NCBI GenBank assembly: GCA_900088475.1
Contig: FLMG01003186.1
Location: forward strand, 1-43,812
Origin: Hyphochytrium catenoides
Taxonomy: Eukaryota > Protista > Hyphochytriomycota
Reading direction: 5' to 3'
DNA: 43,812 nt
Position numbers and translations under genes: made by a program. The stretch's first letter is position 1; each line of letters opens with the position of its first letter. This document shows, piece after piece, positions 5,359 through 43,363 of this stretch. The notes below the pieces were generated by a model that did not search any database, had not been told where the DNA came from, and saw nothing but the letters and a program-made list of their open reading frames with translations.

Positions 5359-8300
5359 CTATTTATCTTCCTGAAGTTTAAAGGGTGCAGTGAAGCCTGA
5401 TGACAGTCGAGCTTGGAGGCCCAGATGACGTAGGTATGAAGAGGAAGTAAGGCGCGAGAGATCCAGAAGAAACTGCTCGTTCTCTCGCATCAGTTGTCGT
5501 TCTTCTCTCTCATCCCGCTTTCCGAAGTGGAAGTGAGCTGCCGCCGGTGCCACGTCCTGCTTTGATGAACCGGCAGAGGAAGGAGGAGCATCGACGTTGG
5601 GCTCCACATCGCTCATTGACAGTGCCATAGCCTAGAAAAGGCAATAAGTTCAGTATGATTAGGGATAAGATTCTTTACGGAGAACTAGGGAGGGAAGTAG
5701 GACTAAACGAGATGACAGAAGCTCTTTCCAGCTGTTCGCCCTCACCTTCGCCAGGGACATTTCTTCATCGACATCGCTTTCCACCTCATGTCCTTCTGGT
5801 GCAGGGCCTGTCAAAGAGTGGGAAGCAGTAGTTAGATGGCTGGAGAGGTATGCCTATCCCTTGTCAGTAGCTATTTACCACCGTCTCTTCTTGGCGACTG
5901 CATCTCAGTCTTAGCTTGTACCAACTTTCCTACCACTTATTCTTCTCAGTCTCTACTTGTGAGCCCTTACCAACTTGCAGTTCTTCTCCACTGAGTCTCT
6001 TATAGAAGAGGATGTATGCCGAGTCCGATATAGAGGTTCGCATCGTGGTTTGAATATCTTCCCAGCTTGTTACCGTGATCTTCAGGAGATAGCACCCGAA
6101 GGATTGCCGGAAGTTAGCACAGTGAAGGTTAAGACAGTGCTGCATAGAAAGAATAGTAATAAAACAAAGGAGACCAGCCGAGAGAATGGGCGACTACCAA
6201 TACGCAGACACAATGGAATACCTGGGTTGGAGGCTAAGATACGTTAGACGATGGACAAACTCACCATTGCATCGTTGAACTTTAACCAAGGAGCGTCACC
6301 AGCCTCCTCCTTATGCAACCCTAAACTATTACTGTGCCGGGCGTAGGCGTAGTAGTGCCCGGAATTGGCCGAAGCTCCATTATGCACAACAATAGCGTAT
6401 AAACCATATGTCCGACTATATCCAGCCGCCGCTCCAGCCTCAGTTAGATGAGGACTCAGCGCCTTGGGAACCTTGTAAAGGCATTTAGTACGACTGTGAT
6501 GGCTAAGGAATCCTAGTTCGTTTTATCCATCATAACTGTCACAGAATCCTCCTTTCTTCAGGGTCAAGCCCACTTGGAGGTTCTCCTGATAGTCTCTCCT
6601 TCTCGCGTCTGATAACGGCACCCTACACATGTCTTACCTCTGGTAGCGTTAATCGGGGGTCAAACTTGACGTGGTGCAAAATCTTCATCGCTCTATTCTG
6701 CTTCCAATCGTACCACATCCGCTTGATAGTCATGATTAGGTGTAGTGGAGGTTCAGTAAGGATGGTGCGGGTCTCGAAGGCTGAGAGTTGGGAACATGAT
6801 GAGCACTGCAGTTTGTTCTCTCCTCCTAGCACTCTTGGCGATACGAGACGGGCCAGTAAGGAATCCACCGTATGACAGGAGACCTAGAAGAAGCGCAGTC
6901 GCTTGGGTAAGCAGTCCTAATCACCTCCGTTTGTTTTTCCATTTTGCTGGTGACTCCCGTACGGCCCTATTGTCTAACTTCTTTCATGAAAACTGACTAC
7001 TCCTATTAGCTGCCTCTATACTATCCTTAGCAAGAGTTAGGGGCATGACTACAGTGTCTCTGCTCCATCCCTCAGCCTACGTACCCTCTCTGAGAAGAGT
7101 TCCTTTCCGTCTTGCCATTCGGTGCCAAAGTCCCTCTTAAAAGCTATCTGAACATAGTTGTCCTTCACAATATTCCATTCACCCTGCTCATGACCCTGGC
7201 TCCACCAGCCTACATAGTCCATTAGCATAGATGGCCACATAGGAGGTTGTAGATCAAAGACAATCTATAAGGGATAGAGATTGAACCAGTACATCAAGTG
7301 GATTGTCCAGAGGACTCAACGCTTACTACAGGATGGCAGTGTTTTCGAATGTAAGATGATGTCGTGAGAGTAGTAAATGAGCAAGAATGATCTCCATTAC
7401 TTCCTACCTTTTGCCATTGAAAAGCCAGAGTCAAAGGCAAACTCACATGGGAATCGCACCTCGGTCCGGTTTTGTTCTCCTGCTACTCAATTTTAGCAGT
7501 GAGAGACATGCTCAGAAAAGTAGAACTCGAGGAAACCCTCTCTCAACGCTAACGAAACTTAAAGCGTAACAAAAGACGACCTCTGAGAACAAATGTCTTA
7601 CCCCATAATCCTGTAAAGGTAGATCCTTCGCCGCCAGCACCGTCCTGTCCTGCCAGGGGCGTCAATACGCCAATTATCTTTCCTGGCATATAACCTTGGG
7701 CGACAGAGTCATATGTGCCCTCCAAGATTCTGCCCTCCGCTCTCTCTACGGCATACAATTGAAGGATGCCGACGCTGCTTGGGTATTGTCCGTTCAGCGG
7801 ATGAGGCATAGGAGGTCTCTCAAGTGGGGCTCGCCTAGAGACGCAAAGTACAGGTCGTTCGAGACACCCAGGGGAGGGTTAGTGACGATATAGAAAGAAT
7901 CGAAGAGGCTAAGAGCGGCATAGATGGATCAGAGATAAGAGAGGCCCTCACCTATAGCAGAGATACAACCCTTTTCCTCCAGCCCCCGAGTTCAAGTTCG
8001 CATCCATCCCTAGTGGAGTCTGAGAAAGTTTCGTGAAGCCGGGTGGCAGAGTCTAAAGGAGCATGAAATGAAGGTTAGCAACCTGCAAGACTTAGAAATG
8101 AGGGTACGTCAATTTTCACTCCCAGGACAGAGTGCCAAAATAAGTTCATTTTGACGAAGGGTAAGGAAATTCTCCTCCCACAGACGCTCATCAACATACT
8201 GTGTGGCTTTTGGTAGACTATCCAGTTCCATACCTCCTTCTCAGGCCAAATGATAGAGATGTCCATAATGTATTCGGATTGCTTCTTAGAAGCAGAATTT

Positions 8301-11300
8301 AACGACGACTTCCCTTCCACCCCTCCGTGTTGTTGCTCTGCCCTCCGATAACAAATAAAGATGGGTATGCCTGAAGTGCCTGCATTAAGATTAGCGCTCT
8401 CTCCTCGAGGCGTCTCGTAGACAGGGATAAACCCTTCCGGCGGTGTATCTATTTCTCCAAAAAAGATCTATTCATATGAGAGCCGACGCATTAAAGGCCG
8501 ATAGCGACGAACCCAGAGAAAAAGTATGGAAGAGCACAAGATACAGTGAAGAAGTGACAAAATGCTATTTCTAAAATGCTGGTAAGCGAGGAGTAGACAG
8601 GGTCGTTGTTGCTAGTTCATTGAGGCCCAGAACTAGTATGACTGGGACCAGATCGTGGCTAAGGCACTGTTCAATTTAGAAGCGCTGAGGACAGGAGTTC
8701 GGGTTACTGACCCCTAGATCCTGGATAGGAACTCCATCTGCGCTCCTCTGGACACACACGTATAGCGATTCGCCCCCTGAGTACAAGGAAAAGAGTGTTA
8801 CTTATTTAGTAAGACTGAGAGGAAGAAGGGCACCCAGACAATGGGGAGAATAAAGCTACGAAGCAAAAGGGTGCAGCTTTGGATAAGTTGGTCTCAAAGA
8901 ACAGAGCCATACCCTCATTGACATCTCCCGAGGCACCGCCCACAGTTGTCTTAATGACTTCGAAACCCTTCGGCACAGGGTCTGCTCCCTTGATGACGGA
9001 AACTGCAGTGACAGGAGGCTTAAGAGACACTTCCTGTAGGTAGGAAGAACGGGGGGAACGCAGCTGTCAGTAAGAGAGAATCTGACAGCGAGAATAGAAT
9101 GACAAGCCAAGAGCCCACCAAGATAGCTATAACAACTAATAGGGATAAGTATGCTTGAGTTGAGAAGCTGTCTTTGATTAGCAAACCTTGGTACTTTGTT
9201 GGGCGGCTATAACCGCACTCTGCTGCGTCGCCACGTCATAATATCTTCCTTCCAGCAGTACCAAGTTATCTTGCAGCCGCATGCGGAAGCGAAGGCCCTG
9301 TGCCACATGCGTCAAGGGGGAGAAGTCAGAAGGCATAAGGAAGGACTGACAATGAAGACAGTTGATCCGATACTTAGAGTCTACTCAGACAGTGATGTTA
9401 GAAGTGATGATGGTAGGCGATTCAGGAAAGAAGGGTTTGCTCGATAGCATAAAAAGAAACAACACTTACTTGTGGCCTTTTGGACTTGTCGTCAGTCCAT
9501 GTTCCAATCATCTCCCACTCCCGTGGCTGGATGGACATTGCCACTCCCCTGATCTTTGCATTTGTTCTTCCAGCCAGGGAGCCTACACCATACCCCTCAA
9601 GAGTGAACCCTAATTCCAAGCTAATGAAGGTGGAAGAATATAGTGGAACAATCGAAGCGAACACGGATAACAAATCGAAAAAAGATCAGGCGAATAGAAC
9701 ACAGATGTTACCTTGGAAGTGAATGGCCACTCCTTTGCTAATCTCATTAGTAAACTTAACCACTCTTCGATTTCGCTCGGCCTTTTCGTCACCTGGACAA
9801 ATGAAGAATAAGAATCAAAGCAAAGATGGGCAAAGTCTTTGCACAGTAACGCCGGCCCCGTAATAAAGAAGGCCATGTCGGCGAAAGGTCCAAAAAGGGA
9901 AGTAAAGCAGGTGATCTACTGCTTTTCCGGAAGGTGGTTTGATGACCTACTTCTCCAATTTCCAAGAACATCTGCCGGCCCAGCAGGCTGCACAACGTCA
10001 ATCCACTCGTACTCTTGATACTTTGGGATCTTGCGTGGTGCCCTGAAGACGTCGATTACGTAGAGGGGGCAGCCACTCCCTGTCATGGTAAAGAGGAGAT
10101 AAGACGGCCTAGATTGAGTCCTTCTGTACGAAAAGAACCCGTACGCGGAAGGATCAAGATACTGATGGAGATTTGTAAGACAAAATGCGCCTTTGGCCCA
10201 GCGAAAGCGGGAGGAAAAATGGGCACCAACCTCTTCTGACAGCCAGAAGTTTTCCCTCCTGAGTCTTTGGACCGATGACCTCAAAGCCATCCTGCCTTGC
10301 CTTTGGTACCTCCTCAGATGCGAGCAACCGAATATCAGTGATTGGGGCCTCTTGGCCTCCGTCAGAGTAGGAGAGGTATAGCTGATCGCCTGTTTTGGCA
10401 GCGTTAGGGAGCTGGCAGTGAAAAATCTATCGCTGAACGGCGTTAAGCCCCACTTATCGATCCCCAAAAGGTACTTAGCAAATTATGGGCGCAATCGCTA
10501 CAGAGAAAGTGCAAGAGGGGTTGACTGCTACCCAGGAGGTGCCAATGCCGGGCTTGGACAGAAAGAAAAATCCCTGTGCTTGAAGTGTTACTTTACCAGG
10601 GTGAAGATTAACATTGTCGTGCACTATCTTGTAGCCTGGCAATCCCTCCCGAACCGCCTTGAGGTCACGAATGGGTAGATCTGAGCGGTAACAAAGGAAG
10701 ACTTTGGTGCCTAGCCCGAGAAAGAGAGCACAAGCGGTAGAGGTGGCAGTTAGTAAGTCAAGCATCTCATAACGACGACGGAGGAAGTGAGTGCCTATAC
10801 TAGGGATAAGCCCTAAGACAACCTAACAGTCTTCATTTTTAGCCTCTTATCTACCTCAGCCTCTACAAGAAGGGGTTCGCATACCTTGACCTTGGTTGAG
10901 GTCGACTCGAACTTGTCTGAACCCATCTGGCACTTGCTGGTCCCCAAAGATGACCTGCAGGTATGGATGTTAATGTGTGAGGCCCTAAGTCTATAAGCGA
11001 GGCTACACGGGTGGTGATGGATAGAATAGGCTTACAATCTAGCGACACTACCTGAATGTCCGTGATCGGGGACTCCCTATTACTCCGTCTAAAGAAGAGG
11101 TAAACCTGATCTGCAATGCTACAGTGAATAAGGACAAGGGTGACGTTGATTAGAAATTGGAAGGTGCAAAGAGACCTAGTCGTAAGCCCTGAGATTGGGC
11201 CGATTACCGTCCTCCTTGGTTTATATTAGTCCGGATACATTCATAACCTGAGAGCAATGGGACCGGATCCCCGGATTTGGCTGTTTTGATGGCTATCTCT

Positions 11301-14300
11301 GTTATTGGTTCCTTGCCCTCAGTCCGTGATACACAGAGGAAGACGTAGGGAGCACCATCTCTGTCCTTGTTCAGGTTATAGTTCAATCTGGTATGAGAGC
11401 AACAGCGCGATAAGGGAAGCGCCACTTCCTCTAACTCAATTTTTGGAAAAAGGTAACAACAGGAAGGATTTCACAGAGACAGACAACTAGTTCCAAAGCA
11501 AAGAGCCAATGAGCTTAGGTGGGGCAAAGCCACTAAAAGAGGTTCGTGAAAAAACAGCGCCGTTGGTCTATGATTACCGCTCATAGTCAGGCGGCGTCTG
11601 GATGTCCTCCAACTTAGAACCACTAACAACAACCAGGTCGGTTATCGCCGTGTAACGCAGGTCCAGCATGTTCAACATGAGTTCCCAGAAGTACTCCGTC
11701 TAGAAAAGATGGGAGAATGTAGAGCGAGGGGAAGCGACGCTCAGGAACTACAAGCTAATAAGACGACAGAACAGGTAGATGGGCTCCAAGGACGGTAAAT
11801 AGTGGGGGAACGCGGCAAAGATCTTTAGTGTTAGAGAAGCATTGACGTGAATCAGACGAGGACGCTTGAGACATGACATAGAAGAAAGAAGCCTATGCGA
11901 AGGAAACTCAAACAGGAAGATGGAGGCCGCAGCTCCATGTCTGCCATTTCATCTTATAAACAAAGAGCAATACAGAGCCTTCCTGCTACCTTCACTGAGA
12001 CATGATCACAACTCTTGCACCGTAGTGCAGTGGCTTGATTTCCTCCGAAGATAGAGCGGAAGGCGTCTGGTAGGTTCGATGCCCTGAACCCGAGCTCGAG
12101 TTGGTCCACCAAAAAGTTTGCAAAGTCTGAAACGTCCTGTTGACAGATAGTGTGAGTAAGAGTCGAGGACGGTACTCAGAGGGGAGACCGGATGAGAGCC
12201 TCGGTTACGTAGAGGCCAAGAGATTAGAGTGGGCAGCAAGGTTGAAGGGATAGACGATGTAACCGGCAAACCCTCTAGACTCAGGGTATACTTTGGAGAT
12301 GGAATCCGGGGCGCTACAGGACTAGAGATGAACAAGAACCTGTTGTCTCCCCTTGGGGAACTGATCCGGAAGAATGAGCTGAATTTCGTGCGATGGCGTC
12401 GCCTTTCTCTGGCTAAATAACAAGCGAAGGAATAGCCGGCGGATAGCGACGAAGAACTGCAACTTCCCCTCCAGATCGTCTAAAGCTTCTGCATGCTGGA
12501 TGGCTTTCAATAAACACCTGGTGAGGGAGACATTGCGGGTACAAATGCGTGGCCTAGCACACGAGAGCATGGACTCCAAAAAATTTGGGAAGGGAAGGTA
12601 TAGGTAGACATCTGACTGCGAAACCGAAGGGATGATTGCTATTCTACTCACCGTCTCGAAAATCGTCTGTCATAAAGAGCGCCTGGAAGAGGGAGTTCTG
12701 ATAGCAAATATTGGTCAGGTCTTCCTTCATATTGATGAGACCCGTCAGTGAAGCAGACGAGGCGGAAGAGCCGCGGAAGTGTTCGCTATCTCGAACGAGA
12801 AGGGACGACCATCTGCCAGAAGTTTCTCCTACAAAAAGTGGAAGTGAAAGAGTCAGAGGGATTAGGAGAGAGCTTATCGAATAACGCCATTGACTTTGTC
12901 TCAGCAGGATTCGGTCTAGGGGACACGGGGTTACCTTTGAACCATTTCCCGTCAAACTTAGAGCAATCTTCTGCGAACGCCAGCAGAACGGCGCTCCTAG
13001 CTCCTCGAGTCATCTACAGGACAAACAGATCAGCTCTGAGGCAGACGACCTTTTAAGGGAATAAGGGAGAAAGCGGCTACTCGGGCTGTTACAAATAATC
13101 AAACGATCAAATTAGCCTTAGAATCGAGGTGGAGAAACAAGAGAGAAGGAAGCTTGACACGGGTCAAAGCATAACAAAAGGTAGTACCTTCGTCCATGCA
13201 CCGCCTCTTTCTCCTGCCTACCTGTTGAAAACTGCCAAGCAGTACCCATCGTCCATCCTGTAGCCGGGCAACCCCTCGGAGTAAAGCACTAAGGTTCATG
13301 ACGTTCCGACCTTCCATTATCTGAGGATGTAGAGTTAGGGTCGGTCGGCTCTCTCAAGTATGCCCTTTTGTGCGTAGAACATTATATCCTTGATTCCTTA
13401 ACTGGCTTGTGCATTACCTCGCCGAAGGATGCTGCCCCAACGTCTAGCTGCATGTTCCCCGCGGTTGCTTCCCATCGACCTTTAAAAGGTGGGCAAGGGC
13501 CTCCTTCTTCGTCCTCAGTCATCATCCTCTCGTCTGAGAAGAGTCGCAACTTCATGGCCTCCAACTCTTGCCACATACCATTTCCAGAAGCTTCTTTTTG
13601 CGCTCCTCCACGGTCAGAAGAAGTGGTGATGGGATGGGCGTCCTGGACGACCTCATGCTTGTCTTCTTTCCTGGTAAAGTTCACAACAATCTTAGGATCG
13701 CCGCTAATCTTGGACGTCCCGAAGGACACGTAGGCGAAACGGTTAGAGCTTAGGGTGGAAATAGACTGACATGCTGTCTTGGTCCGTCGCTGTGGGCGTT
13801 GCAGGAGGCGCGGAAGAGACGTGAACGGCCCTTTCAGAGTCGCAGACAGCACATCGGGAAAGACTGCCACTATTGATAACAGTGCAAGTACTGCAAGCCC
13901 ACTCTGTGAGAAAGGGCGAAGAATAAGATATTCGCAATAGACTTCCTACTCTTCTGATGATAGTAGCTCTCACTTACCGACTTGGGCGGCTGGGATATCG
14001 GTTTGAGCGGCTGGGATAGCTGTCTCTTGACCGGGAGCTTTAGCTATAGACTATCGGTCCCGAGAAATGAGGAACATTAGATCTGATAATATCCCATATG
14101 GTCTGAGCTAACGCAGAATAGGGTTGCCAAGAAAGAAAGAACTGCAACATGAACAGCTCCATTCACTCAGGCCCGAAATACACTCTGACAATGTTTGCTA
14201 CCCAGAGCTTTAATAATTGTTGAAAATAGTACGGAGTAGTAGTTTAGAGAGAACTCTCACCGCCGGCCTTGGGCTACCGCATACAGAGCACGTGGAAACT

Positions 14301-17300
14301 TCCATAGGGTTCCGCAAAGTGCAGGCCTCACAAGACCATTCTCTGAACGTTTTCCAGTGCAGGCCGCAGGGACGGAAAAGCATTAATTCATCTACCCTGT
14401 GAGGCTTCTGGGCGAGGATGTTTGCTTACCTTGCTATTTCCGGGACTGGGACCAAAGCAGACGCTAAATCTACCGTCTGATCTGATGATAAAGGTGAACC
14501 TTGACCACAAACAGAGCAGAACGAAGCGGTCCGATTGTTTACCACGGTGCAGCTTTTACACCGCCATGCTTGAACGGCAGAGGAGAGGGAGGAGAGTGGA
14601 GGTTCAAACGAAGAGACCGTAGAATGAGGAACCCCTGCAATCGCCTTGCACACGCTGAGGGCAGTTCCACACAAGCATGACCCTTCGGGGTCTCCAATGT
14701 AGATGAGGTCGTGTCCATCGTGGCAATAACGAGCACAAAGCTGGCAGAGCCCTGGGCCCTGGCACATATGGGAGAACATAGAGAGGGGGCGAGACAGTAA
14801 CGAAGAGCGATCAATAAAGGAAGAGACGTCAAGCGGTTTATATTGCTGGCTGAGTGGTGTTTTTACCTGAATAATGTTGCAAGTCCTACAGCCGTAATGC
14901 TCAACCTTTCCTTGAACTCTCTCTGGGTCTTTCTTCGAACAATATACTAACTCCTGGCGGTCATGAACGGATGAAACGGCCTGTTCCTGTCCCTTCACCG
15001 CCCCTGTCCCAATATCCCGTCAAGCGATCAGAATAAGAACCAAGCTTTCAATCCAAGTGGTGGAACCATTTAAGAACCTTCAAGCTCGCTTACCATAAAG
15101 CTCCAGCAGAGGAAAGCCTTCTGTAGCTGTGTCCGCAGCCCCACTTCTGCAAGGTTCATGAAGAGATAGTGAAAAGGGTTAACCAGCTATAACAGAATAC
15201 TGGCATGCCTATAGAGCTACATCTATGCCAGAGCCAACTTCACCACCTCTAGCGTGTCGTCACCCTTAGCTCGAACTCGCTGTCTATCAACCTGTCTTCT
15301 TACCTGCCGCGGAAGGACCAAGATGTAAGTGCGAGCGAGGGCATCGTCGAGGCCAATGGACCTATGGTGCTCTCGTTCTTGAGGAAACCATGACCTGGCG
15401 CAAGACAAGCGATGCCTAGACGAATACTATCCATCCCCTCCTTCAGGCGGAGTAGGGAGAAAAGATCAAGAGGGATATCCCAATGCAGATTCTCTCCCAC
15501 GGAAATGAGTGATAAATATTGGCGGCGATCGTATGCCCATCTGACCTGTTAACGGCAGGCGGATGAGCAAGCTAATACTATTTGATTTGTGATTCTACTT
15601 ACCTTCATCTCCCCAGGAGAGGGTGGTAGGAGAACCGAGGAGAGTCTTCCTAGAGAGTAGAAGCGGCCGGATTCCTTCGGACTCGATATTCGCAGAGAAA
15701 TGGTCAAGACACCACTGCGTTCCAAAGATAGCAGCAGAAGGAGTACTGGATCCTCAAGACATGTGCTTGATGAAGAATAATCCAGAGGGAATCCAAACTT
15801 TTGGCTAGAGGTGAGAGGGACGGAGAGAGGTCGAAGGCCCCAGCAGGAGGTGTTGGCAAGAAGAATGCCGACGCAGAAAGGAGAGATTGGGGAGCATGGA
15901 TATTGAAGGCTCAAGGATGTATCGAACCCTTCCGCCATTCTTAATCTCCTTTTATGCCAGATAGCAGATCCCAAGTGGATGAAAGGACTCTGGCTTTCCT
16001 CCCCAGATAGGCTCATTACACATCTTCCGGTACCGTCCTCAATCCTTACCCCAGAGGTGCACAGGAAGTCTTCATTGTGCTTTTGAAAATGCCCAGTCAC
16101 TGGGAGTGAGCGAAAGTGACCAAGAGGAGGTTCATCACTAGGGTTTATCCTGTACAATCCAAGTTATTACATTTGACGCAGATGAAGCGGAAACAAGAGT
16201 AAGTCGATAGGGTAGCAGTAGGATCCATGGCAATAAGCGGCCCCCTTACTCAAAGCTGATGAACAGAGGCAATAAGGTTAATCTCAAAGCAAGAAATGCT
16301 GCATAGTCAAGCAGAGCCCATACGTTGATCACACATGGCAGTCTTTAAGAACCAGGTCACCTCCTCAAAGACATTACCTATATGCGAGATGGTGGAAGAG
16401 CACTCCGTGATTGCCAAAGGGTGTAAAATCAGCTAAGAAGCAGCTCGAATCTAATAATGGCCAATATCCCAGGAGGCCTGGCATTATTCGGGTAAGTCGG
16501 TACGATCGTATGGCAGAGCAGACCCTGCATGTCCCGGATGCTCCACCAAGAGGCATTGTGCAGGGAGAGAATGAGAAGCGTTCGGTTGGAGTTTACCTGG
16601 TTCGTCACCCCGTTTAGCTCTCCTATTATCTGTACCAATCTCTTCAGCAGTCCTGCCTCCTTTCCAGACCGTAAGCTCGCACAGAGAACCCGTAAAGCAC
16701 CTTTCAGGCACCCAACCAATCTCGGTTTCCTGCTCTTTCAGGCTAGGAAGGCCCCCTAGAACAAGGGGAAATGAGGACATGTTCTGTCGTCTTGCTACGG
16801 GTATGTTCCCTTGAACTTTTCCATCCACGTAGAGCATGAAGCTACTGTCATTGCTTTGGAATGAGAACGCGACATGCGAGAAAGCTCCCCGGGAAAGCGA
16901 CACGCTGGAAGTCATAGAGGTTGATTGCTCTTTTCCCCCTACGTGAGCAAGTACTGGAGGGTTTGCGAGCATTGTCAAGGTAATTACAAGCAGAAATAGG
17001 AGGAGGAGCAGTCTTGACAAACCTCGAAGGTCGCCATCGAGTTCTATCCGCCACTCTTCGGTGCTGATAATAACTGATCCTCCTAAGGTTTCTTGTGGTG
17101 CAACACGGATTGTTCATATCGTAAGACAGATATAAAGAAGAGTGTGCGCAATTGTGGCGCAGTGCAGAAATGCGTCAGTGAAGGGGAAACATGTCAAGGT
17201 GGTACTGGACGGTGGTGGTGACTGGTATACGGAGTCAGTAAGTTGTATGTACCAAGTGAGGTAGATGAGGTTTAGCAAGGTACTTGTAGTAGAGTAAGAG

Positions 17301-19914
17301 AGATGGATTGATCACCCTTCTAGTATGGCTATGGATAGCTTTCTCACCGTCTAATGGCAAAATCCACAGCTCGACTGTCCAAGACTCAGCCCCAAGAGCT
17401 TGCATTAAGGCCCTGTCTATCACTATACAGTCATCTGCTCCTCCTCTAGGCGAATAGACCCCAACATCTCGAAGGCTGCCTCGTTCTCCTCCGACATTCA
17501 TACGCATGTCATTTTCCAGGGAAAAGCCAATCTTTTCCTCCGCTCTTTTTGCAAGGAAAACTCCTCTGCTATCTCCCTTGCTCCAGATCCCGGTAGCTCG
17601 CTGCCCGAGAGGATCGATGAACAGCGAGCAAGGGGAAAGGACAGATGACTGGATCAGGTAGAACAAGCCAGTTTCAAAGACCGACCGCTATGTAGCGAGC
17701 ACCAAAGGGCAGCAGGGTCCAGCGGAGTAGATGCGAATATATGTAGAGCGTCGAGTTCTGGCTGACCGCAAAATTCGGAAGATATAGAGCTTACCCGATC
17801 GACGGAGATAATTGACTGTGTCGGAGCGGCTGTGTCACACACATGGCACCTTTTGGCATTCCCCGGGTTCTCCGCTGTGCAAGATCTGCATGTCCATGGC
17901 AATGCCATGGATCCGCTACTTGATTGCCCTTCGGCAGTGGAAGTAGAAAGCATGGAAGCCTTCCCGCCATCTGCCTTCTCATCACCCTCGCCTCTATTTT
18001 GGACCTTTGCCTTTTTCGATAGTTTCCATAGTGCTTCCGCGGACCAGGTGGCTGCCTTACCTGCCTGCCAATGGGTGTCGACAGGCCGAAAAACAAATCC
18101 TTCCATCTGTTAAGAAGCTAGTTAGAGAGCGTACGATTTGATGTCAAGCCACATTGAGGGCAGGGGAAGATTGAAGTCGGCCCTAATGTACAACAGTAGA
18201 GCCCAGGGTCTAGGTTACCTCAATTACTTCTGAAGCATCAACTGGACCTTTAATAGTGGCTCGGACCTCAGCTCCGTAACACGAGCTCACAGACCGCAAA
18301 GTAATGGGAGCTCCGGCAATCTGACAGTTCACAATCGTTAATACTTCGAGAGTAGTTAGAAGCGAGTGTTAACCCATAAAATGCTAACATAGCCTGAATA
18401 AAGGGGGTTGCATAATGAAAGCGGATCGCCTTCACAACCGCTGCAAAAGTAGCGGAAGGCAAATAGTACCTAAAGGAGAAAGTTAGGAGTTACCGTCAGG
18501 TAACGAGAGTATTGTACCTGGTGAGAAGTGGGAGTACCCTCTTCCGGCTCCCATCGGCCCTCGGGCCAAGGTAGTGGTCTCTCAGCGTACTGACCCTGGG
18601 GCCTATGCCAGGAGAAGCTCCGCAATGTTTCCTCCATTTCCTTCCCAGTCTTCCTCCTCTGCTCCCTCATTAGTTTCTGGTAGAGCTCTCGAAGACCTGT
18701 CCTCTGGCCTCTATGGAGGTAGAGAAGAGTCTGCAGAAGATCAGCCATGTCCGCCTGGTAGGCGCTAAACTGATCCCATTGAACTATAAGACCTATCATG
18801 AGCGGGTAAGAATAGTGCTTCTCTGGTTTTCTGCGTCCTTTACAGCTGGCTACCGCGTTAAAGAGCATCATTGGTACGCTAAAGTTTGGGCATTGAACTA
18901 GACCCTTCTTGTTCTCTCTCCTCTTATCCTTCGTCTTCTCTCTGTCGTTGCATCCGTCGGGTCACAAACGTGAGCGGTACTATGCCTCTGGCATATTGTA
19001 CTAAGTCGCATTCTCATTCCCCTCCTTCTCATGAATGGCTTCAGCTACCACTCACCTTGTGGTCCTTTAGTCCCTATTACAGCGAACAGAAGCTCGTGGC
19101 TAGCAACCAGCAGGTCTGGTGAATGCTGATACCCAAGAAGGCACTTTCGGAGTAACGGGAGACAAAGCGGTCCTGCCATGGGTTCAGGGCTCAGGTTCTG
19201 CACCAAAACACGGACCATGGTCTCCGTGAGTAACTTCAGCTGCAGAAAGAGCCTGGCTCGAGGACAGACAGGATATTGTTAACTGCTTTTGCGTAACCTC
19301 GAGGCTCCGGGCGTTGAAGTATCAGGAAAGAGTGACTGCCAAAAAAGCGAGTGCCCAAAGCACACCATCAGGTACAGCACAGCAAAAGACAGAGAGCGTT
19401 GGACAGGCTTAGATATAATACGCCATACCTCGCCTTACAGAGCTCGTCTATGACAGCTGACATGAAGCTCAGCGCTCCCGGACAGTATTGCCCCTCGCCG
19501 CGGAGAACAAGGAATGGTAAAGTGTGCGGAGTGAAGATCTCATGGACCTCAGGCTCTTCAGACACCAATAGCGCAGCCGCTACCCGCAAGGTCTAGGGAA
19601 TGGGGGAATGGTCATTAGAGAAGGACGGAAGTACTTGCTTCATAAGTTTCCTGTGATGATGAGATCTTTCCATGTAGATAGTGCCCGGTGTGCCTCTCCG
19701 TCTGCCACCACCGGTTTATCTCCCCTTACTTGTCTAAGTGGTCCTCTGAGACTTTTACCTCTGGCTCACGGCTATGAAGCTCGTCCACCACCTGCCACCA
19801 GGAGCCTCTGTCATCCTGGCTCACTGTTTGATGCTGGCTATCTCCGTGGCACTGGACTGCAGCCTTAAGGGTCTGCGCTAGGGCCTCCTTAAGCAGCTGG
19901 AGGTGCTCGGCCAT
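5359..19914 (-). CDS. Giant multi-exon ubiquitin carboxyl-terminal hydrolase (USP35/38-like) with NZF x4, LamG, L-type lectin, UBR-box, MABP and UIM modules
   Basis: USP motifs in order on the minus strand: Cys box TGLINMKEDLTNICYQNSLFQALFMTDDFR (~12660-12745); GRQQ|DVSDFANFLVDQL; IFGG...RCKSCDHVS (~12000); CSSC...EPPLHLIMTIKRMWYD...KILHHVKF (6637-6883); His box VVHNGASANSGHYYAYAR...WLKFNDA (6265-6410); AYILFYKR (~6000). Exons from 12136 down to the stop at 5359 join in phase at GT-AG sites. The 5' exons were only partly traced and the ATG at 19914 is the best candidate. Confidence 0.85.
7950..11660 (-). other. MABP (MVB12-associated beta-prism)-type repeat blocks inside the USP gene
   Basis: Spliced translation gives nine repeats of consensus PITDI.V.....P.G[FY].......N[LI]N.G.....[YF]LCY.R, e.g. 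SPITDIQVIFGDQQVPDGFRQVRVDLNQGQGTKVFLCYR and YIMDISIIWPEKETLPPGFTKLSQTPLGMDANLNSGAGGKGLYLCYR. Six lie at ~10000-11660 (the last two degenerate) and three at ~7950-9030. Confidence 0.8.
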
Positions 19915-20726: not shown

Positions 20727-21896
20727 CTAAACGATGGCGGCTGATGGGTCTAGGGTCACCGGGATGAGCTCCATCGTCATGCCTGCCTTTGTACAGAGAG
20801 CATGCACTGTCCCTCGATATTTGTGTTCATCACCCAAACTAGCATAGATAGGCAGCAGCATTTCTAGCAAAGCGATTTCCGCTTCTTCTCCTCCACACAG
20901 CGCCACTGCCTTGGCTCTACCAAAGTCTTGCCTGTCAAGGTGAAGTTCCATTACCGTCCTAAAGCTAAACAGATCCGTCAGGCGAAGTAGCAGTCAGTCA
21001 GTCAGCAGGGAAAAACGTCAGGCAACCGTAGGAGGACTTACGTCTGCAGACTGGGCTTCACACCCAGATCACTCATCAGGCAGAGAAGCACTCTCATGTC
21101 AGGAATGTCTGGCATTTTCTTGAAGCACTTCAAGAGACTATTAAATGTTGCAGTGTCCGGCACCAGACGATCTGCTATCATCTGCTCAATGAAGCTCTCC
21201 AGTGTCATCGGAACGTTTGGAAATTTCGCGCCGAGCGCCGGTTTGGAACGCTCCGCCCACCTGTAGCCCATTTTTTAACCCAATGACGGCATTTAGCTAT
21301 CCTTTGATGGAACCTACCTCTGATGCGTACGGGCAACGTGCCAATAAGTTCGCAAGCTCAAAGGCACTTCTGCCCTTCGCATGATCTTGCGGATACACTC
21401 CACCGCCAAAATGTCACCCCTTCTCTCCAATGCTTGCAGCAGAGCAGTAAACGATTCCTCCCTTGCGAGGCCAAGGCGAGCAAGTTCTTGGAGGACCTGG
21501 AGCGCTTCTCCGAAGCTAGCCCGCTCTATTGCAGCAGTAACGAGAGCTTCGTAGGTGATCAACAGGTTAGGACTGCCAGGGACTGCAGCTAGGTGCACCT
21601 TATTGTCAACCCTGCTTGCTTGAGTGTCAGATTGGTTGTCTGTAGAAGGCGAGTAGTAAGGACTGTCGTTACCTGTCGCATTCGATGCGCCGACTTGGCC
21701 GCCCGTCCGGTCTTCCGGACATAGAGGCGTCGTAACTGTCGGCCGTAGTAAAAGCGATGAAGTCCTTCTCAGTAGGTTTTGCTAGCTGCTGTACCGGGAG
21801 GGTTAGGGCTCGTCTACCGTCGCTTCCTGGAAATAGTCTCGATCCTAAAAGACGGCGCGGGGACCACCCGCATATCCCCCGACTGAGAATCCGCAT
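20727..21896 (-). CDS. Pentatricopeptide-repeat (PPR) protein, probably mitochondrial, 4 exons
   Basis: PPR-like motifs MIADRLVPDTATFNSLLKCF...MSDLGVKPSLQTFRTVM and TYEALVTAA...ALQVLQEL. Three GT-AG introns join in phase. The N-terminus MRILSRGICGWSPRRLLGSRLF resembles a mitochondrial presequence. Confidence 0.75.
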
Positions 21897-35517: not shown

Positions 35518-38176
35518 TTAGAGGAGCTGTTGAACGTCAATATGTCCCTTCGGACTTGGCGACCGTCTTGGGTCGCCGTCTGTGGTCCTGCTCGTCTCTC
35601 CTCCTTTGGTTTGCCCTTCTTTGGCTCTGTCTCCTCCCGCTCCTGATCCTTCTCCCATACTGTGGGAGCCGACATTGGCGATTGAGGCTCTTCTAGTCTT
35701 GCCCTTCTTGATCTCTGCTTGCTTTTGATACTGCGTGACCAGCTCAAAGAGTCTGTACCTCTTATCTTTGGGGGTTGAAACTAGCTGGACATCTCGACGC
35801 TTATCATAGCGCTGGAGGTTCTCCAAGCGGTTCCTGGCAACCTGTGTAAACCAAAGGGAACCAAGGAACAAACCAAATTGAAGAGCAAGACACGGAGGCG
35901 ATTGTTCGTCAGAGCCGTTCCCAAGCTGACGACGCTGAGAAGGAATAGAGTTTCTACCGTGGCCAATTCGTCATAGATCTCTGGGAAGTCGACTGTGAAC
36001 TGCAAGAGATGCTTCTTAGAGAGCACATACAGCTCACAGTTAGGGCTCAGCACCACCACCGACGCGTTTCGGCAAGGTGTCAGCAGGCACCCTATCTCCC
36101 CAAAGTAATCACCTTCAAACAGGATGTAGAGGTCCAGGAAAGGGGCATAAGGAAGGCAGAGAAGAATGAAATAAGGGCGTGCTCAAGGCGGCCTCTGCAA
36201 CTAGACGATAGGGATCACAGAGACAGGAAAAAACCAAGCAAAGGAAGGCCACGCGAATCACCAGCGAGCTTCACAAGGGTAGGGGAAAGGGGACAAAGAA
36301 GGAAATAAGCCATAACGCGAGAGAGACTGCGGAGAATGGGGAGAGAAGGACTTCGCAGAGATGATCTGTGGGCATCACCAGGATTGAGGATTTTGATCTG
36401 TCGTTCTGACTTGACGATTGTCACCTGACCCTTGGTTAAGAAGTACCTGAGGGACAGGCATTAGGTCACCGCAACGGGTTCTTGGGCGATGGAGAGAGGC
36501 GTCGACAGTGGACGTGCAAAGATCAATCAGGTGACTCAAGGCCGAGATTGGCCCAAGAGAAAGAAGAGAATAGGGGAGAAAAAGCGGTGTCCAAAGAGAG
36601 AAAGACGGTCAGAGTAGATGGGACAAGGATAAAGCCTGGACCGATTATGCCTGCCATTCAATAACAGAAGTGCAAGATACTAGAGAGGATGCTATAGACA
36701 CAGCTGAGTCAGGATGAAAACGAGAGAGACAGAAGAAGGGACATACACGGAGAGAAAGAAGCAGAAAGAACAGGGCAAAGACTGACATTTCATCTGCGTA
36801 TGCACCCTCCAAACAAATGAACTCTCCCTTGTGAGAGACCATCGGCTGGAGCACCACGACCATCGATGCGATGCAGTGCGGTATCTTCTGCTTGAAGAAA
36901 GGAATCTTCGCAATCAGCTCTTTATCTATGTAGAGAACCTGGGAGGGAGAGATTATCAGCCTAAAGAAACGTAGAACCAGGAAAACGTCCTCAGCTAAAG
37001 AGCGAGAAAGAGATCGAAGTAACCAGAGATGGTGGGAGAGCGAAGCCGGGGCCTTGCTGCCAGAGAGACTGAGAGCTGGGGCGGGGGAAAGGAGGAGAGG
37101 GAGATGGACAGCNNNNNNNNNNNNNNNNNNNNNNNNNNNNNNNNNNNNNNNNNNNNATACTCGAAGTGATTCCGCACCTTGGATGCCAGGGCATGAGGCA
37201 GATGCGCATCTCTAGAGCGTGAAGAACGACAGACACATAAAAAGGCATTAGTAGAAAGAGAGAGAGACAGAGAAAGGAAAAGGAGAGAGAGAAAGAGAGA
37301 AGAAGCAGCAGAGACTCGGGTTAAATGAAGCATTAGCTGAGAGCCCAGGTAAAGTCAAGGAGAGGCGAGAGAAAGAATGACATATGCGTCAGAGATAAGT
37401 GTTCCAGGACTGTAGAGAGACTCCTGCTCCAAGGAACGTCTCTGACCTGATAAAGTCTGTCACTTGCTGCATCTTCTGCCTCGCCTCAGCGTTCTTAGCA
37501 TCAAAGGAGCTCATGATGGCTGACATAGAACTCACAATATAGGAGAACCACGTAACACCTGGAAAGGAAAGATAAAAGATCAGGATGGACAAGGATGAGG
37601 AGGAGTTCAACCGAGAATCGGGAGAATCAAAATCAGAGAGATGAGCGAAGAGAAAGAGTATAAAAGTAAAGGTTTTAGGAAACAGGAAGCATGCAAGAGC
37701 TTCTTAGTCGTGAGATTAGGTGACGAGGGTAAAGCGAGCGAGAGAGAGAGAGAAAAGAGAGAGAGAGTGATGGGGAGGATCAGCAAAGGTGGAATGCCTT
37801 TGAAGTTGAAAGAGAAGGAGGGGACGCTGTGTGAGAGAGAAAGAGAGGCAAACAGATAGAGAGAGACGGAAGAGACATCGAAAGAGGTAAAGAGCTATCT
37901 TTCTGGCGTTCGAGAGCCAAGGGAACATGTTAAACACTCAGTCCCCGAGCTTGAAAATACTGCAGGAAACCTTACCTATCAACATCACAACGATAGCGAA
38001 GAGCTTCTCCTGCCAAAGGAAGGCGTTGATATCTCCATAGCCCACTGTCGCGAGGCTGGTAGGGACAGCAAAGAGAACGCTTAGACACTCCTACTATGGC
38101 AGGTCAGACCACCCAGAGAGGACGGCCGCAACCGTCCTTGATAAGTAAGCCACTAGACAGTACTCTTAGACCTGTT

Positions 38177-38222
<46 letters not shown>

Positions 38223-39028
38223 TGTGTGTCTCTCTCTGTCTCTGTGTCTGTGTCTGTGTCTGTCTCTTTCTTTCTTTTGTCTTTCGATCTCTCTCTCGCC
38301 CACACTCGCTCTCCATTATTACTTCTTTGGCCTTTGACCCTACTTACGTAGTGACTGTCCAGTAGAGCGCCGCCACATATTTCTCTCCATCTGTCCCGTG
38401 TTCTATCCCATGTTTGACGACCCAGCTCTTTGCCAAGTATTGCCCGTCCTCTCCCACGGCCAGCAGGTGCCAGACACATCCCACCAAGTGAGAGACGAAG
38501 AGCATCCAGAAGGCGATGGAGGCCAAACGAGAAACGCCCTAGGAGGAGGCAAAAGATAGAAGAGGCCCAAACACTGTGAGACAGCATGTCAAGGTAGCAG
38601 CCATAGATAACAGATCAAGATAGATGAAGAAAGAGAGAAAGAGAACGAAAACAGAAGGAGAGAGAGGAAGAAAGAGAAGAGAAAGGGAGCGAGAGATAGA
38701 GAGAGAGAGAAAGATGCGCCTTCGCGAGATGAAAAAGGAGTACGATCCATTTTGGTCACCTGGTGGATATTATAGCTACTTTCTACCCAGTCAACAGTGC
38801 GCTGCACGGCTCCAATGCGGGCAAAGCGCATTAACCGCAGGAAGCGAACCACTTTGAAGATGCGCGGCAGTTTTACCAGGCGACCAACCTGGAAGAAAAA
38901 GGAAGCACGTAGGATTATCACAGGGAGAATGGTAAGCGCTTAAACTATCGAGCGAACAAGAGACAGAAGGGAAAGGAGGGTGGACGAGGAAAAGAAGGAG
39001 AGAGAGAGAATGACAGAGAAAGGGGGGA

Positions 39029-39059
<31 letters not shown>

Positions 39060-40244
39060 GAGAGAGAGAGAGAAATAAAGAGCGAGATATCAGCGAAGGG
39101 CTAGACAAAGACCAATTCAACGAGAGGAAGAACGAAAGAAAGGGAGGGCGGTAGGTGTAAGAGCGAAGAAGATTGAAGGGATCTGCTGGTCTACCTGATT
39201 GAGTCCGTTAAGGCTATTCTCTCCAAGAATGAGCCCTAAAGGAAGAGATGAAGCAACGTCGACGAGGAACCAGGACTGGAGATACTGCCGGGCAATCGTA
39301 GGGAGATGCGTGGTATACTCTCCTAAACGAGAGATAGACAAAAGAGAGAGAGAGGACGAAAGTGACCCAAGAAGCACGTTAAAAGAAGTATGTTCAGCTC
39401 TAGTAGGCTCTAACCCCAACTCTAAGCAGAAGAGTGAGCTTGCCAAGACGACTAGTGCCATATGATTGTTCGCCCTTTCTTCAACAGGCTGCCTCTGTTT
39501 CTCTCTCTGTCGTCTGGCTGCCAGAGAGCCCATCCCCTACCTGTCTTTGCTCGCGGTGCCGTTAGAAAGGTGAGGGGGACATCGAGAATGAAGGTAACAT
39601 CAATCATCGTCTCGAGGGGCTGAAGAGCCCCTGGCGTGTCCACGTCGAAGCCAATTCGATAGGGAACCATCACTCCCACGTAAAGCAGGCACGCGATGGC
39701 TGTGGGCAAGAGAGAAACACAGAGGGAGAGAGAGAGGGTAAGTACGAGAAGGAGGTTCAGAGAGAGAGAGAGTTTGGGCGAAAGAGACAGACTAATGAGG
39801 TTGCCAAACAGGAAGTGGAACAAGAGAAAGAGCTAGCGGGCCAGGGCGGGGCCAACAGGAGAAGGGCCAAGTTGTGTTGACAATAGTACTGAAGCTCCAG
39901 TTCGTGGAGCTGAGAGCATGTCGAAGAGTTAATTCCTCCTGAACTGGAAGCGGAGAGAGAGAGAGAGAGAGAGGAAGAAAATCACACAGCAGGCAAGATG
40001 AAAGAGAAAGAATTAAAGACAGCAGGAAAGAGAGCAAGAGAGAGAGAAAACGTAGCGCGGAAGAAGGAAGTAACTGAGGGAGAGAAGCCCCCCCGAAAGA
40101 GAGAGAAAGAGAGAGTGTTATCTAAGGAAGGGAGAAACGTACACCAGAAGTCCCAATATTTCCTGATTGGACCGTCTGCAGGTAAAAGGTACCAGGGTAA
40201 TGCTGTCTGGAAGCCGTGCACATCTTGGATCAGCAAGACGGAGA

Positions 40245-40302
<58 letters not shown>

Positions 40303-42339
40303 GAAGAACGGGCTACCCGAGCTCTACGCAGATGGAGAAGAGAGAGAAAAACAGGGACACGTCCAAGACAGATCTCGAAAAGGTGGGGAAGAAGAATTCT
40401 TTTCACGCGGAGTCACAGGGAGACAGAGAGCATTGAGCTCACGAAGAGGCAATAACGTGACCAGAGGTAGCCTACCATTGCCGGGTCCGTCCACGTAGAG
40501 GTTTGCCTGAGGAAAGCCTGTCCCTTGGACTTGGACGAGGGAGAATGACGGTTTATAAAGGCACGCACAGAGCCCATAACGGTCTTCTTTGGAGGAAGAA
40601 AGAGTATGTCCCTCTGAGAGCCCGTCTTTATGCCTGAAAGGCGCCGCTGGCGAGTCCTTATGACAGGAGAAGGAGGAGAGTTTGTTGATGCCGATGCCGC
40701 GACATCGTTTGGGATCTCTCCTGAGGAAGGGAGAGACGAAGAGAGAGAGAGTGGCCGACTAGGTGACGGCGGAGACGTAGAGTTGGTGGTGGCGCTGGAA
40801 TGCTGGCGGCCTGCTGGAGGAGGAGATTCCTTGCCACTTCTAGCTGCTAGGAGACCAGCACGCGGAGAGATGAAGAGGGAAGAGGCATGATGAGGACACC
40901 AAGCTTCTTCCCGCTGTTTTGTTTCTCTCTTTCCTGGTTGTTATGCCTCGTCTGGCCTTTGTCCATACTCTTCGGGCTTTCCTACTGTTTCTTTTCCTTC
41001 TCTCTGCTCTAAAGTCCCTTCCCATACCTGCTCCTGCAGTCTCAAAATCGAACTTTGAGGCGGACTCGACCTTCAGGTCCGAGCTCACTCCTGCTGATAA
41101 AAGTTCCGGCGAGCTCCTCACCTTCAGACAGTCAGCGGGATATCAGGCTAAGACGTCCAGCGCAAGAGAAGAAAGGCACAGTCCTTTTCTTCCTTCCGTT
41201 CTCTAGCTCCCTCTGCTTGTAGAATGGCTTCCTNNNNNNNNNNNNNNNNNNNNNNNNNNNNNNNNNNNNNNNNNNNNNNNNNNNNNNNNNNNNNNNNNNN
41301 NNNNNNNNNCTTCTTCTTTGTGGTCTGCCAGTGTGAGAGCTCTAATCAACTCTCCGGCTAGTGTCTCACCTTAGCATCCACTTGTCCTCTCGAATTCGTA
41401 GACTTGGGGCTGCTCATGGGCAGAAATGGATGTAAAAGAGAGCACGAAGCACCGAGGGAAGAGAGAGAGCAACGATTAGGTGGTAGTACGAAGCCAAACT
41501 GGCATGAGTGCGGCCGTACAGGAGAGAAGAGTGAACGAGGGAGACAGAGAGAGAGAAGAGAGAGAGAGGGGGCTTTGGCTCCTACAGAGGAGGCTAGTAC
41601 GAACAAGAAAATGCAAGTACCATAAATGACTTTCAGTCCTATTTGGCTGACCTCTCTCTCTCTCTTTCTTCCTCTGTCTCTCTCTCTCTCTCTCTCTTCA
41701 AGGTCTCTCTACCTCTCACGATGTTGTTTCTCTCCATCTTTCCGTGAGTACCTCTCCCTTTCTTCCTCTCTCCTTCTCTCCTCATGGCTCTCTCCCTCAC
41801 ACTTGTCCTGTCGCATGAACTACCTAGGGGGAGAGAAGCCAAGCGTGGGTCCTTGGAGCTCAGGCACCGGCACAAAGGGCGGAGGTGTGACGACTGCTGG
41901 GCTGACGACGATGTGATAGTTCCTCGAGACCCGCCTCGAGGCGCTGGTGTCAGGGGATAAAAGAAGATTCTCTGCCCCTGCGTTAGCGATTCCTGCCAAG
42001 GAGGAGAGACGACGCTCTCTCTCTCCTCCTGAGGCATGGAAGAAAGTCACAGGGAGAAAGAGACTGTTAGACTTTCTATCACAGTGCAAAGTAAAGTCTT
42101 GATGAGTGGAGTCAAGTCCGAAACGAGCTCTTTCTCTCTCTCAGCGTCGCCATTATTCTGTCTCCTCCTCCTTTACTGTCTCTTCGCCATTATTTGCGGG
42201 CCTCTCTCTCTCTGTCTCTCTCTCTCTGTTTCTTTCTCTGTTTCTTTCTTTCGTTCACTGAACCGTCAGTGTAGGTCTTACCTTGGGGAGAAGCGGCGCC
42301 ATCGGCTTGCGGCGCCACCTTTGCAGAGCTGCCTTCCAT
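35518..42339 (-). CDS. Voltage-gated K+ channel with cyclic nucleotide-binding domain (CNBD superfamily), multi-exon
   Basis: S1 KYWDFW...VMVPYRIGF; YLQSWFLVDVASSLP; S4 GRLVKLPRIFKVVRFLRLMRFAR; S5 SHLVGCVW; pore YVAALYWTVTTLATVGYGDI; S6; C-linker; CNBD IPFF...GEFICLEGAYADEMYFLTKGQV...GDYFGEIGCLLTPCRNASV. The N-terminal exons (ATG 42339, MEGSSAKVAPQ) and the stop are less certain. Part of the C-linker falls in the gap at 37113-37156. Confidence 0.88.
40247..40297 (+). repeat. (GA)n dinucleotide microsatellite, intronic
   Basis: Perfect AG run of about 50 nt inside a channel-gene intron. Similar tracts occur near 38180, 39030 and 41650. Confidence 0.95.
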
Positions 42340-42837
42340 CGTCTCCAAAGGAGCCTCAAAGGCTCTCTGTCTATCGGCCTAGAGCGCCTGCATCAGTGGT
42401 CCCTCTCTTTCTCTTCCTATCTTCTTCTTCAGTATCCTCTTTTTGCTCTCTTCTCTCTCTTTTCCTTATTCTCCTCTCGGAGGTGCAGCGCTGCCTCACG
42501 TGTTATCGCTTTAGAATAGCTAAAGAGTTATATTTTGTGCTTCAGGGTCTGCAAAAGAGAGAGAGAGAAAAAGAGAAAGATTGAGAGAGAAGAAGATGAC
42601 GGCCCAGAACTAGAGCAGAGAGGCAGGCATAAGGGCCCCGGAGAGGAGGGAACGGCTGTAGTCGTACGACCCTGTCCGCCAAGAGGAAGGAGGGCGGCGG
42701 GAAGCCGCATGAGGGAGTCTGCGATGACGGTCCAGAGAGAGAAGGATGGAAGGGAGAAGAAATGAGAGACATGGTTGAGGAATGGGTAGAGGAAGAGGAG
42801 AGAGNNNNNNNNNNNNNNNNNNNNNNNNNNNNNNNNN

Positions 42838-42877
<40 letters not shown>

Positions 42878-43154
42878 GCACATTATCTATGACAAAGGGG
42901 CTTCTGAAAGGTCAAAACACAACCCCGCACGTAACGCTCTGCGTTTGATATCAAACTGAGTTTGGTAACCCATCCAGTTCTTACTCAACTTAAGACTCTT
43001 TACAAAAAGTATAGTGGGTTTGCCAAACAAATGTGTGAGGCAGCTACGTCCGAGGGGGTTACAAGATTGCTGGCCCTAGTAGACAAGTGGACCACCAGTG
43101 CCTACAAAAGAATGGGAACTTCAAAAGAAGATAGAAAATGGGACAAATCTAGGA

Positions 43155-43284: not shown

Positions 43285-43363
<79 letters not shown>
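43155..43363 (+). repeat. Imperfect (GA)n microsatellite cluster
   Basis: Extended AG/GA-rich low-complexity tract. Another run extends off the window end from ~43782. Confidence 0.9.

Follow-up and report, generated by a model that had tools for sequence, protein, structure and literature searches.

We analyzed a 43,812-nucleotide window (contig FLMG01003186.1, positions 1 to 43,812 of the forward strand, from the Hyphochytrium catenoides assembly GCA_900088475.1) and concentrated on the segment at 12650-19914. The coding open reading frames (ORFs) of this segment all lie on the minus strand, and the gaps between them measure a few hundred bases at most. With a probability of about 60%, we read the segment as the pre-catalytic half of one long, many-exon minus-strand gene, extending from ~19914 to ~5300 and encoding a protist ubiquitin-specific protease (USP) interrupted by MABP domains. 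Its prototype would be PITG_02561 of Phytophthora infestans, a deubiquitinase (DUB) into which two MABP domains are inserted and whose N-terminal part contains six Zn ribbons that bind ubiquitin; a role in endosomal cargo sorting was proposed for it (de Souza and Aravind 2010, PMC2881412). The DUB encoded here is probably longer than 3,000 amino acids (aa). Read from the N terminus, it is predicted to comprise a helical solenoid that contains QHSP, a first NZF finger, a LamG_3 jelly roll, a second beta domain started by GYWPLLD, a UBR4/FBXO11-type finger devoid of the amine-anchoring residues, three more NZF fingers, a pre-catalytic segment rich in beta structure, and then the Cys box.

Sequence searches were run exon by exon, by window coordinates, or with the uninterrupted ORFs of relative loci, and the genome (61 Mb, 4,759 contigs) was searched in six frames. 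In this DNA, genes are split among numerous short exons. The relatives are three long loci, L007, L008 (also P0001), and L009, which came from a metagenome scan with the His-box exon. Each consists of a single ORF, of 2,723 aa in L007, 2,674 aa in L008, and at least 3,105 aa in L009, which runs off the end of its contig. A first-pass annotation of the window had quoted a series of peptide strings, and all were found in minus-strand ORFs where it had placed them.

Exons and domains upstream of the catalytic core

The N-terminal region (18494-19914, minus strand) starts with an ATG at 19914 and, according to ORFs and splice candidates, comprises at least four exons of helical, alpha-solenoid-like character. 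The LLGYQHSP string, which contains the QHSP motif, is encoded in the ORF at 19048-19278, and EETLRSFSW, followed by a PLPWPEG motif, in the ORF at 18473-18961; QHSP and PxPWxxG are both conserved in L007, L008, and L009. The exons of this region matched no Pfam family of any kind, and for the equivalent domain of L008, the features of Atlas, a protein-language-model resource, indicate generic HEAT/TPR solenoids. Next on the same strand comes a probable small exon at 18213-18368, a 52-codon ORF that was absent from the first-pass list and that has the top codon-usage score in the region. A Pfam scan of all the leftover small ORFs in the region revealed no family.

Four RanBP2/NZF-type fingers are encoded on the minus strand ahead of the Cys box, as the first-pass annotation had stated. 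The W-x-C-x2-C ... C-x2-C scaffold was found in all of them by regular expression, translation, and Pfam (PF00641). NZF1 (17837-17896), with the pattern W-x-C-x2-C-T-A-x-N...C-x2-C, matched with an E value of 1e-4 (ORF 17657-18109) and is 40% identical over 60 aa to the sole NZF of L007. NZF2 (14507-14566; E 4e-3) is encoded in the ORF at 14429-15019, and also matched the NZF of HOIP (7tv4, E 0.005). NZF3 (14279-14338; E 1.2e-8, 34.5 bits, ORF 14213-14425) and NZF4 (13842-13901; E 6e-7, 29 bits, ORF 13746-13973) both scored over the cut-off. As known from Npl4 and TAB2, a Thr-Phe/Tyr pair and a later hydrophobic residue of NZF fingers contact ubiquitin. The Thr of the pair is present in each of the four fingers, Ala, Val, Leu, and Val stand instead of the Phe, and the later hydrophobic position, flanked by the final two Cys, is a Val in every finger.

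Two exons at 16597-17480 (minus strand) encode a ConA-like LamG domain (Laminin_G_3). Its Pfam-matched part (16637-16939, within the ORF at 16487-17113) scored 40.1 bits with PF13385 (E 5e-10), over a gathering cut-off of 27.6. The WTVELWI string belongs to the ORF at 17238-17687, and HVAF, LYVDG, and GSLCELTVW to the ORF at 16487-17113. A homologous-protein search with the LamG ORF returned no homologue. Of the three relatives, L008 alone gave a Laminin_G_3 match, at an equivalent position (aa 539-670). Pfam confirms the LamG domain named in the first-pass annotation.

The domain is followed by a short exon at 16380-16475 that contains GYWPLLD, the conserved start of a second beta domain (15304-16100, minus strand). 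The intervening intron (16477-16596) was read in the DNA, the GDEPG|LLGYWPL junction being a GT..AG splice over 16596-16477. The main exon of the second beta domain lies at ~15604-16100 and its closing exon at ~15304-15440, ending in LTSWSFRG. The ORF at 15552-16163 (204 codons) contains SAIWHKRRLRMAEGFDTS in translation, and LTSWSF is encoded in the ORF at 15303-15548.

Between NZF4 and the Cys-box exon, an open frame at 13385-13745 (minus strand), representing one or more exons, matched no Pfam family and has weak similarity to the relatives. The exon at 12652-12860 (minus strand), with a donor site at 12651, encodes the pre-catalytic segment and the USP Cys box (TGLINMKEDLTNICYQNS), in which NICYQNS contains the catalytic Cys (codon 12704-12706). 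Identity of this exon with L007, L008, and L009 amounts to 42-46% over 61-76 aa (z 19-27 versus shuffles). Pfam UCH matched in pieces, in the Cys-box ORF (12647-13009), the exon at 11957-12175 (E 6e-5), and the His-box exon at 6247-6522 (E 2e-10), the latter being listed also by a genome-wide scan. The presence of a Cys box, a QQD-type box, and a His box with Pfam UCH assigns the protein to the USP family (peptidase C19). In L007 and L008, an MVB12/DUF2464 domain located between the Cys and His boxes matches the window at 11195-11413 and 8908-9021. MABP within the USP domain, combined with N-terminal Zn-ribbon fingers (four PF00641 matches), is the arrangement that defines the PITG_02561 type.

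Block order in environmental relatives and extent of the gene

We then compared the segment with its metagenomic relatives. In L007 and L008, Pfam detected a RanBP2 finger (~aa 404-498), UBA-like domains (UBA_4), MVB12/MABP (~aa 1961-2088), and UCH. L009 yielded UBA and UCH matches and, within its USP domain, a dual-specificity phosphatase domain (DSPc). The best local matches of ten window exons in L007 were strictly ascending: the QHSP exon at aa 242-264, the PLPWPEG segment at 354-390, the small exon 18213-18368 at 395-415, NZF1 at 452-504, the two LamG exons at 525-610 and 662-729, GYWPLLD at 753-773, the second beta domain at 805-822, the Cys box at 1422-1489, and the QQD box at 1534-1593. 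Seven of the ten stood at z 2.9-25.7 versus shuffles; the first LamG exon reached z 1.2, and the small exon, although placed as expected, was equal to shuffles (z -0.1). By this sequence comparison, it is very unlikely that the ascending order of the ten best matches arose by chance.

L007, L008, and L009 all resemble the window gene in having a helical N-domain with QHSP, a PPW motif, LamG, and a GYWPLLD-type motif (YWPL in L009) leading into the second beta domain, then a pre-catalytic segment, a Cys box of the form K/A-D-L-x-N-x-C-[FY]-Q-N-S, and an insert within the USP domain. The first-pass annotation had described the segment as an accretion, and its idea of one private to this genome does not hold, since LamG and the second beta part are also present in these distant environmental relatives. 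The differences concern the small modules. A regular expression counted four NZFs in the window gene, one each in L007 and L008 (with a canonical Thr-Phe pair), and none in L009. Unlike the window gene, L007 and L008 combine their one canonical NZF with two UBA-like domains, the second beta domain enclosing one of them; in L009, the only such modules are UBA domains, and the dual-specificity phosphatase domain sits in the USP insert. The UBA_4/UBA domains of the relatives occupy places equivalent to those of the NZFs of the window gene. The relatives also differ in having no UBR-like finger, so that the window gene has this finger and three NZFs more than L007 and L008.

The phosphatase match of L009 (L009:1-9315, plus strand, aa 2125-2240; E 5.5e-8) scored 33.1 bits, just below the gathering score of 33.5 bits. 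It occupies the site in the USP domain at which the window gene, L007, and L008 have MABP prisms, and would represent a DUB-phosphatase fusion by insertion.

That the relatives hold the same block order in single ORFs argues that 12650-19914 and the USP core form one gene, as the first-pass annotation had assumed for the segment. Further support comes from the exons themselves. No Met precedes the motif in the Cys-box exon, and the first UBR exon lacks Met codons altogether, so that neither can start a gene; the second half of the UBR finger shares a single ORF with NZF2; and the single coding strand, the short gaps, and the precedent of PITG_02561 point in the same direction. The alternative is that the segment holds two or more genes, for instance a LamG/UBR/NZF protein ahead of an independent USP. 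It could appeal to the several exon junctions that are not uniquely placed and to a one-gene model built from genomic sequence alone, but it would have to account for the single ORF of the relatives, for internal exons devoid of start codons, for coding ORFs that share one strand with gaps of at most a few hundred bases, and for the 2010 description of PITG_02561, which also links N-terminal fingers with an MABP-containing DUB. We regard such a split as highly improbable. A separate gene beginning at the UBR exon was considered as well and was ruled out by the missing Met in the first UBR exon and the single ORF of the relatives.

Other features were noted in the window and in the metagenomic loci. 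An adjoining gene lies upstream on the same strand (20730-21781, minus strand), with helical-repeat-looking ORFs at ~800 bases from the USP start codon. Positions 38100-43812 of the window are rich in GA/TC dinucleotide repeats and purine-rich repeats (for instance, 103 GA copies at 43158-43363), and the GC and AT skew of this part is strong. Two very AT-rich metagenomic contigs (GC 25-26%) encode small USPs of ~375 aa (L039:7628-8746 and L048:8790-9926), with series of small predicted membrane proteins on both flanks; the source may be a giant virus or else a protist of very high AT content.

Second beta domain, UBR-type finger, and relation to USP35/38

The second beta domain is recognizable in all three relatives. 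GYWPLLD is present in L007 and L008 (z 5.7 and 6.1, respectively, versus shuffles) and shortened to YWPL in L009, and the motifs P-V-x-G-H-F-x-K-x-E-D-F-L, G-S-I-W, and I-L-L-x-x-x-S-x-W are common to the window gene and the three loci. In the alignment, PVTGHFQKHNEDFL, GSAIW, and ILLANTSCW of the window stand opposite PVNGHFTKRENDFL, GSIW, and ILLQACSWW of L007, and G-S-A-I-W ... G-F-D-T-S of the window opposite G-A-L-W ... G-F-D-F-S of L009. In all three loci, the second beta domain is interrupted by a UBA-like domain, an insert that the window copy lacks. In L007 (3571-4794) and L008 (2342-3544), it corresponds to UBA_4 (E 4e-11 and 4e-9, respectively), with low-complexity flanks, in the middle of the second beta domain.

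Searches for a known family were negative. The ORF at 15552-16163, whole or in parts, matched no Pfam family at E values up to 10, no PDB entry by sequence, and, with phmmer, none of 1.84 billion representative proteins, not even itself. A profile of the domain built from four lineages retrieved only noise from the PDB, the exon has no paralogue in the genome, and a homologous-protein search with residues 400-1000 of L008 recovered only L008 itself and the L007 cluster. The possibility that the domain is a repeat of the first LamG was tried and rejected, BLASTP between both giving nothing. Structure prediction with AlphaFold gave an all-beta model for the exon alone, with a predicted local distance difference test (pLDDT) score of 37; for the L008 domain with a six-row alignment, the score was 45.5, and residues 280-390 reached 55-73. 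Foldseek found no match for this L008 model. VIA-align gave a best Z of 5.0, under the noise level of 7-8 stated by the tool, and its subnoise rows were often ConA-like sandwiches: the thrombospondin C-terminal domain, galectins, FRIL, ERGIC-53, the legume-lectin-like domain of Entamoeba, carbohydrate-binding modules, and SPRY. We read the second beta domain as an all-beta fold conserved within this family and probably as a second ConA-like jelly roll.

The first-pass annotation had gone further and had taken this domain for a true L-type lectin, of the legume or ERGIC-53 kind, that binds carbohydrates. Atlas placed the domain nearest to L-type lectin clusters (0.88), its ten best family-bearing matches sharing a family or clan with the top L-type lectin-like cluster; the VIA-align rows for FRIL, ERGIC-53, the Entamoeba domain, and the thrombospondin C-terminal domain fall on model residues 277-391; and GSAIW and SWSF are reminiscent of L-type lectins. 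However, the Atlas value is below 0.9 with low recognition and is rated by the tool as a lead only, one third of shuffled proteins also yield ten matches of the same family, and the VIA-align rows combine a Z of at most 5.0 with a model pLDDT of 45. The lectin families PF00139, PF03388, and PF18483 were silent on the exon, its subranges, and the domains of the relatives at E values up to 10. BLASTP gave no alignment between the domain and the genome's own ERGIC-53-like lectin, the true L-type lectins of this genome being encoded elsewhere, and a GYWPLLD start is just as typical of LamG_3-type domains. An L-type lectin thus appears unlikely, and the glycan recognition and endomembrane glycan surveillance proposed along with it found no evidence of sugar binding and no lectin family match.

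A probable UBR zinc finger of the UBR4/FBXO11 type, identified from PDB searches and splice reading, follows the second beta domain at 14648-14941 (minus strand), the closest matches with phmmer being UBR4 (8j9q, E 0.007), a UBR-type protein of 3,861 aa (9hyf, E 0.012), and FBXO11 (5vmd, E 0.06). Pfam zf-UBR did not match the ORF, its halves, or the six-frame genome. The finger is split by a candidate GT..AG intron (14866-14759, minus strand) of 108 nt (36 codons), which is in frame and stop free, so that the ORF reads through it; the silence of zf-UBR is plausibly due to this intron, which divides the box into short halves. Over the aligned part, the spacing of C-x2-C-x3-C-H-x2-H-x11-C-x-C agrees with that of UBR4, and after removal of the intron, an upstream C-x2-C sits 8 residues before the next Cys. 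We take the same 8-residue gap to be present in UBR4. This presumed numbering fits the residues named in PMC10687169. A Cys also follows C-x-C-G, where UBR boxes of subfamily 2 have an extra zinc ligand (PMC10687169). Taken together, the sequence features indicate that a UBR4/FBXO11-type (subfamily 2) finger is probably present; the UBR box of the first-pass annotation is thus supported by PDB matches and by Cys/His spacing and not by Pfam. The ORF shared with NZF2 had no homologue in a homologous-protein search, the UBR/NZF piece had no match in the metagenome scan, and a regular expression found no UBR-like motif in L007, L008, or L009.

The reading of N-degrons by this finger in the known manner appears unlikely from the alignment. 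In UBR4, Asp1715 and the Phe1713 backbone hold the N-terminal amine of the ligand; the UBR2 counterparts of these residues are Asp150 and Phe148 (PMC10687169). UBR4 F-F-C-D-C-G is aligned with G-S-C-L-C-G of the window gene, so that Leu and Ser take the places of the Asp and Phe anchors, at odds with the N-degron-like recognition that had been suggested.

The core was examined for its relation to USP35/38. USP35 (5txk) was the top PDB match for three of the four catalytic exons in a comparison limited to solved USPs, among which USP38 does not figure: the His-box exon (E 3e-8 versus 1e-5 for USP36), the exon at 6626-6883 (E 1e-6 versus 8e-4 for USP47), and, weakly, the Cys-box exon (E 0.08 versus 1.5 for the next match). 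USP9X was the best PDB match for the QQD exon. Within this limited set, the catalytic core is USP35-like by sequence. Usp38-like_N (PF21246) matched none of the four N-terminal exons, nothing in the six-frame genome at E values up to 10, and none of the contiguous N-domains of L007, L008, and L009, with the limit that remote homology may escape HMMER.

The first-pass annotation had viewed the gene as an orthologue of USP35/38, in which ~6 kb of accreted exons part the N-terminal scaffold from the catalytic domain, and which serves as a cytosolic sensor of ubiquitin, N-degrons, and luminal glycans exposed on damaged endomembranes. The affinity of the catalytic exons for solved USP35 is retained from this view, which also agrees with the alpha-solenoid nature of the N-domain, with a size that looks comparable to Usp38-like_N (337 profile positions), and with the presence of ConA-like domains and MABP. 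The scaffold is not supported, given the silence of PF21246, and the QALFM..DFR likeness to USP35 is not shared by L007, L008, and L009. The UBR finger has neither the amine-anchoring Asp nor the Phe, and the beta domain has no lectin-family match and no sugar- or metal-binding residues that could be identified from the shallow alignment and low-confidence models. We consider this sensor model unlikely and favor an MABP-interrupted USP of the PITG_02561 type.

Proposed mechanism and comparison with known systems

We propose that the MABP prisms would tether the enzyme to a membrane, as in the 2010 proposal for the family, and that the array of ubiquitin-binding fingers would catch ubiquitinated cargo or chains and pass them to the USP site, while protein docking would be the task of LamG, the second beta domain, and the UBR-type finger. 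Since the relatives have UBA-like domains where the NZFs sit here, and Phytophthora has six Zn ribbons, sequence comparison suggests that multivalent ubiquitin binding is the conserved and selected job of the pre-catalytic arm. Several points weigh against this reading of the gene and its product. Exon borders are only partly settled from splice candidates, several junctions having no unique solution, and the codon-usage exon score discriminates poorly and is too weak to define exons. The second beta domain matched no known family in Pfam, PDB, protein, or structure searches. The replaced Phe of the Thr-Phe pair makes ubiquitin binding by the four NZFs plausible rather than assured. Finally, the mechanism, which we consider likely, is deduced from domain content alone.

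A bolder version would make this protein a DUB with its own UBR-type substrate-recognition finger and a ConA-like pair, the membrane-bound counterpart of UBR4-type ligases, which would read a defined cargo feature (an exposed glycan or the end of a peptide) and strip that cargo of its ubiquitin. If true, it would be a reader-eraser design so far undescribed for any DUB, and a UBR finger that binds a ligand would be an unusual reuse of a ligase-type recognition module by an eraser. We hold this to be very unlikely. The gene has no bearing on a long-standing open question, the idea of glycan or N-degron surveillance being without support; what it supplies is a set of concrete modules, each of which can be expressed separately.

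An MABP-inserted DUB with N-terminal ubiquitin-binding fingers is already known as a prediction of 2010. To our knowledge, this giant USP family has never been studied experimentally. New here, as read from the sequences, are the conserved pre-catalytic plan (solenoid, LamG, GYWPLLD domain, and pre-catalytic segment) common with environmental relatives, the apparent replacement of one type of ubiquitin-binding module by another across lineages (arrays of NZFs in the window gene and in Phytophthora versus UBA-like domains elsewhere), and, probably, a UBR4-type finger in a DUB of this lineage. We know of no earlier description of a UBR-type finger inside a DUB.

With human USP35 and USP38 (DUBAI in Drosophila), the gene shares a helical N-terminal domain ahead of the catalytic domain, and with human USP35, catalytic exons that match it best among solved USPs, including an extended loop after the His box. 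It differs from USP35/38 in giving no Usp38-like_N signal, in having fingers and beta domains of ~1,500-2,000 aa in total that separate the N-domain from the Cys box, and in carrying MABP inserts within the catalytic domain. Its UBR-type finger has the Cys/His pattern and, over the aligned part, the spacing of the UBR boxes of UBR4 and FBXO11 (8j9q and 5vmd), but Leu and Ser replace UBR4 Asp1715 and Phe1713, the pair that holds the N-terminal amine and aromatic side chain of the ligand, and the host protein is a DUB rather than an E3 ligase. In TRABID (ZRANB1), an N-terminal NZF array brings ubiquitin chains to the deubiquitinase domain, and this working principle would apply here as well; TRABID is, however, an OTU enzyme with three canonical Thr-Tyr/Phe NZFs, whereas the present protein is a USP in whose NZFs Ala, Val, or Leu stands at the aromatic position. 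Among the closest known systems is PITG_02561, likewise a stramenopile USP domain broken by MABP beta-prisms and preceded by several N-terminal ubiquitin-binding RanBP2/NZF Zn ribbons; by the description of 2010, whose figure is limited to known domains, it differs in having six Zn ribbons and in that LamG, the second beta domain, the UBR finger, and the helical N-domain are not mentioned.

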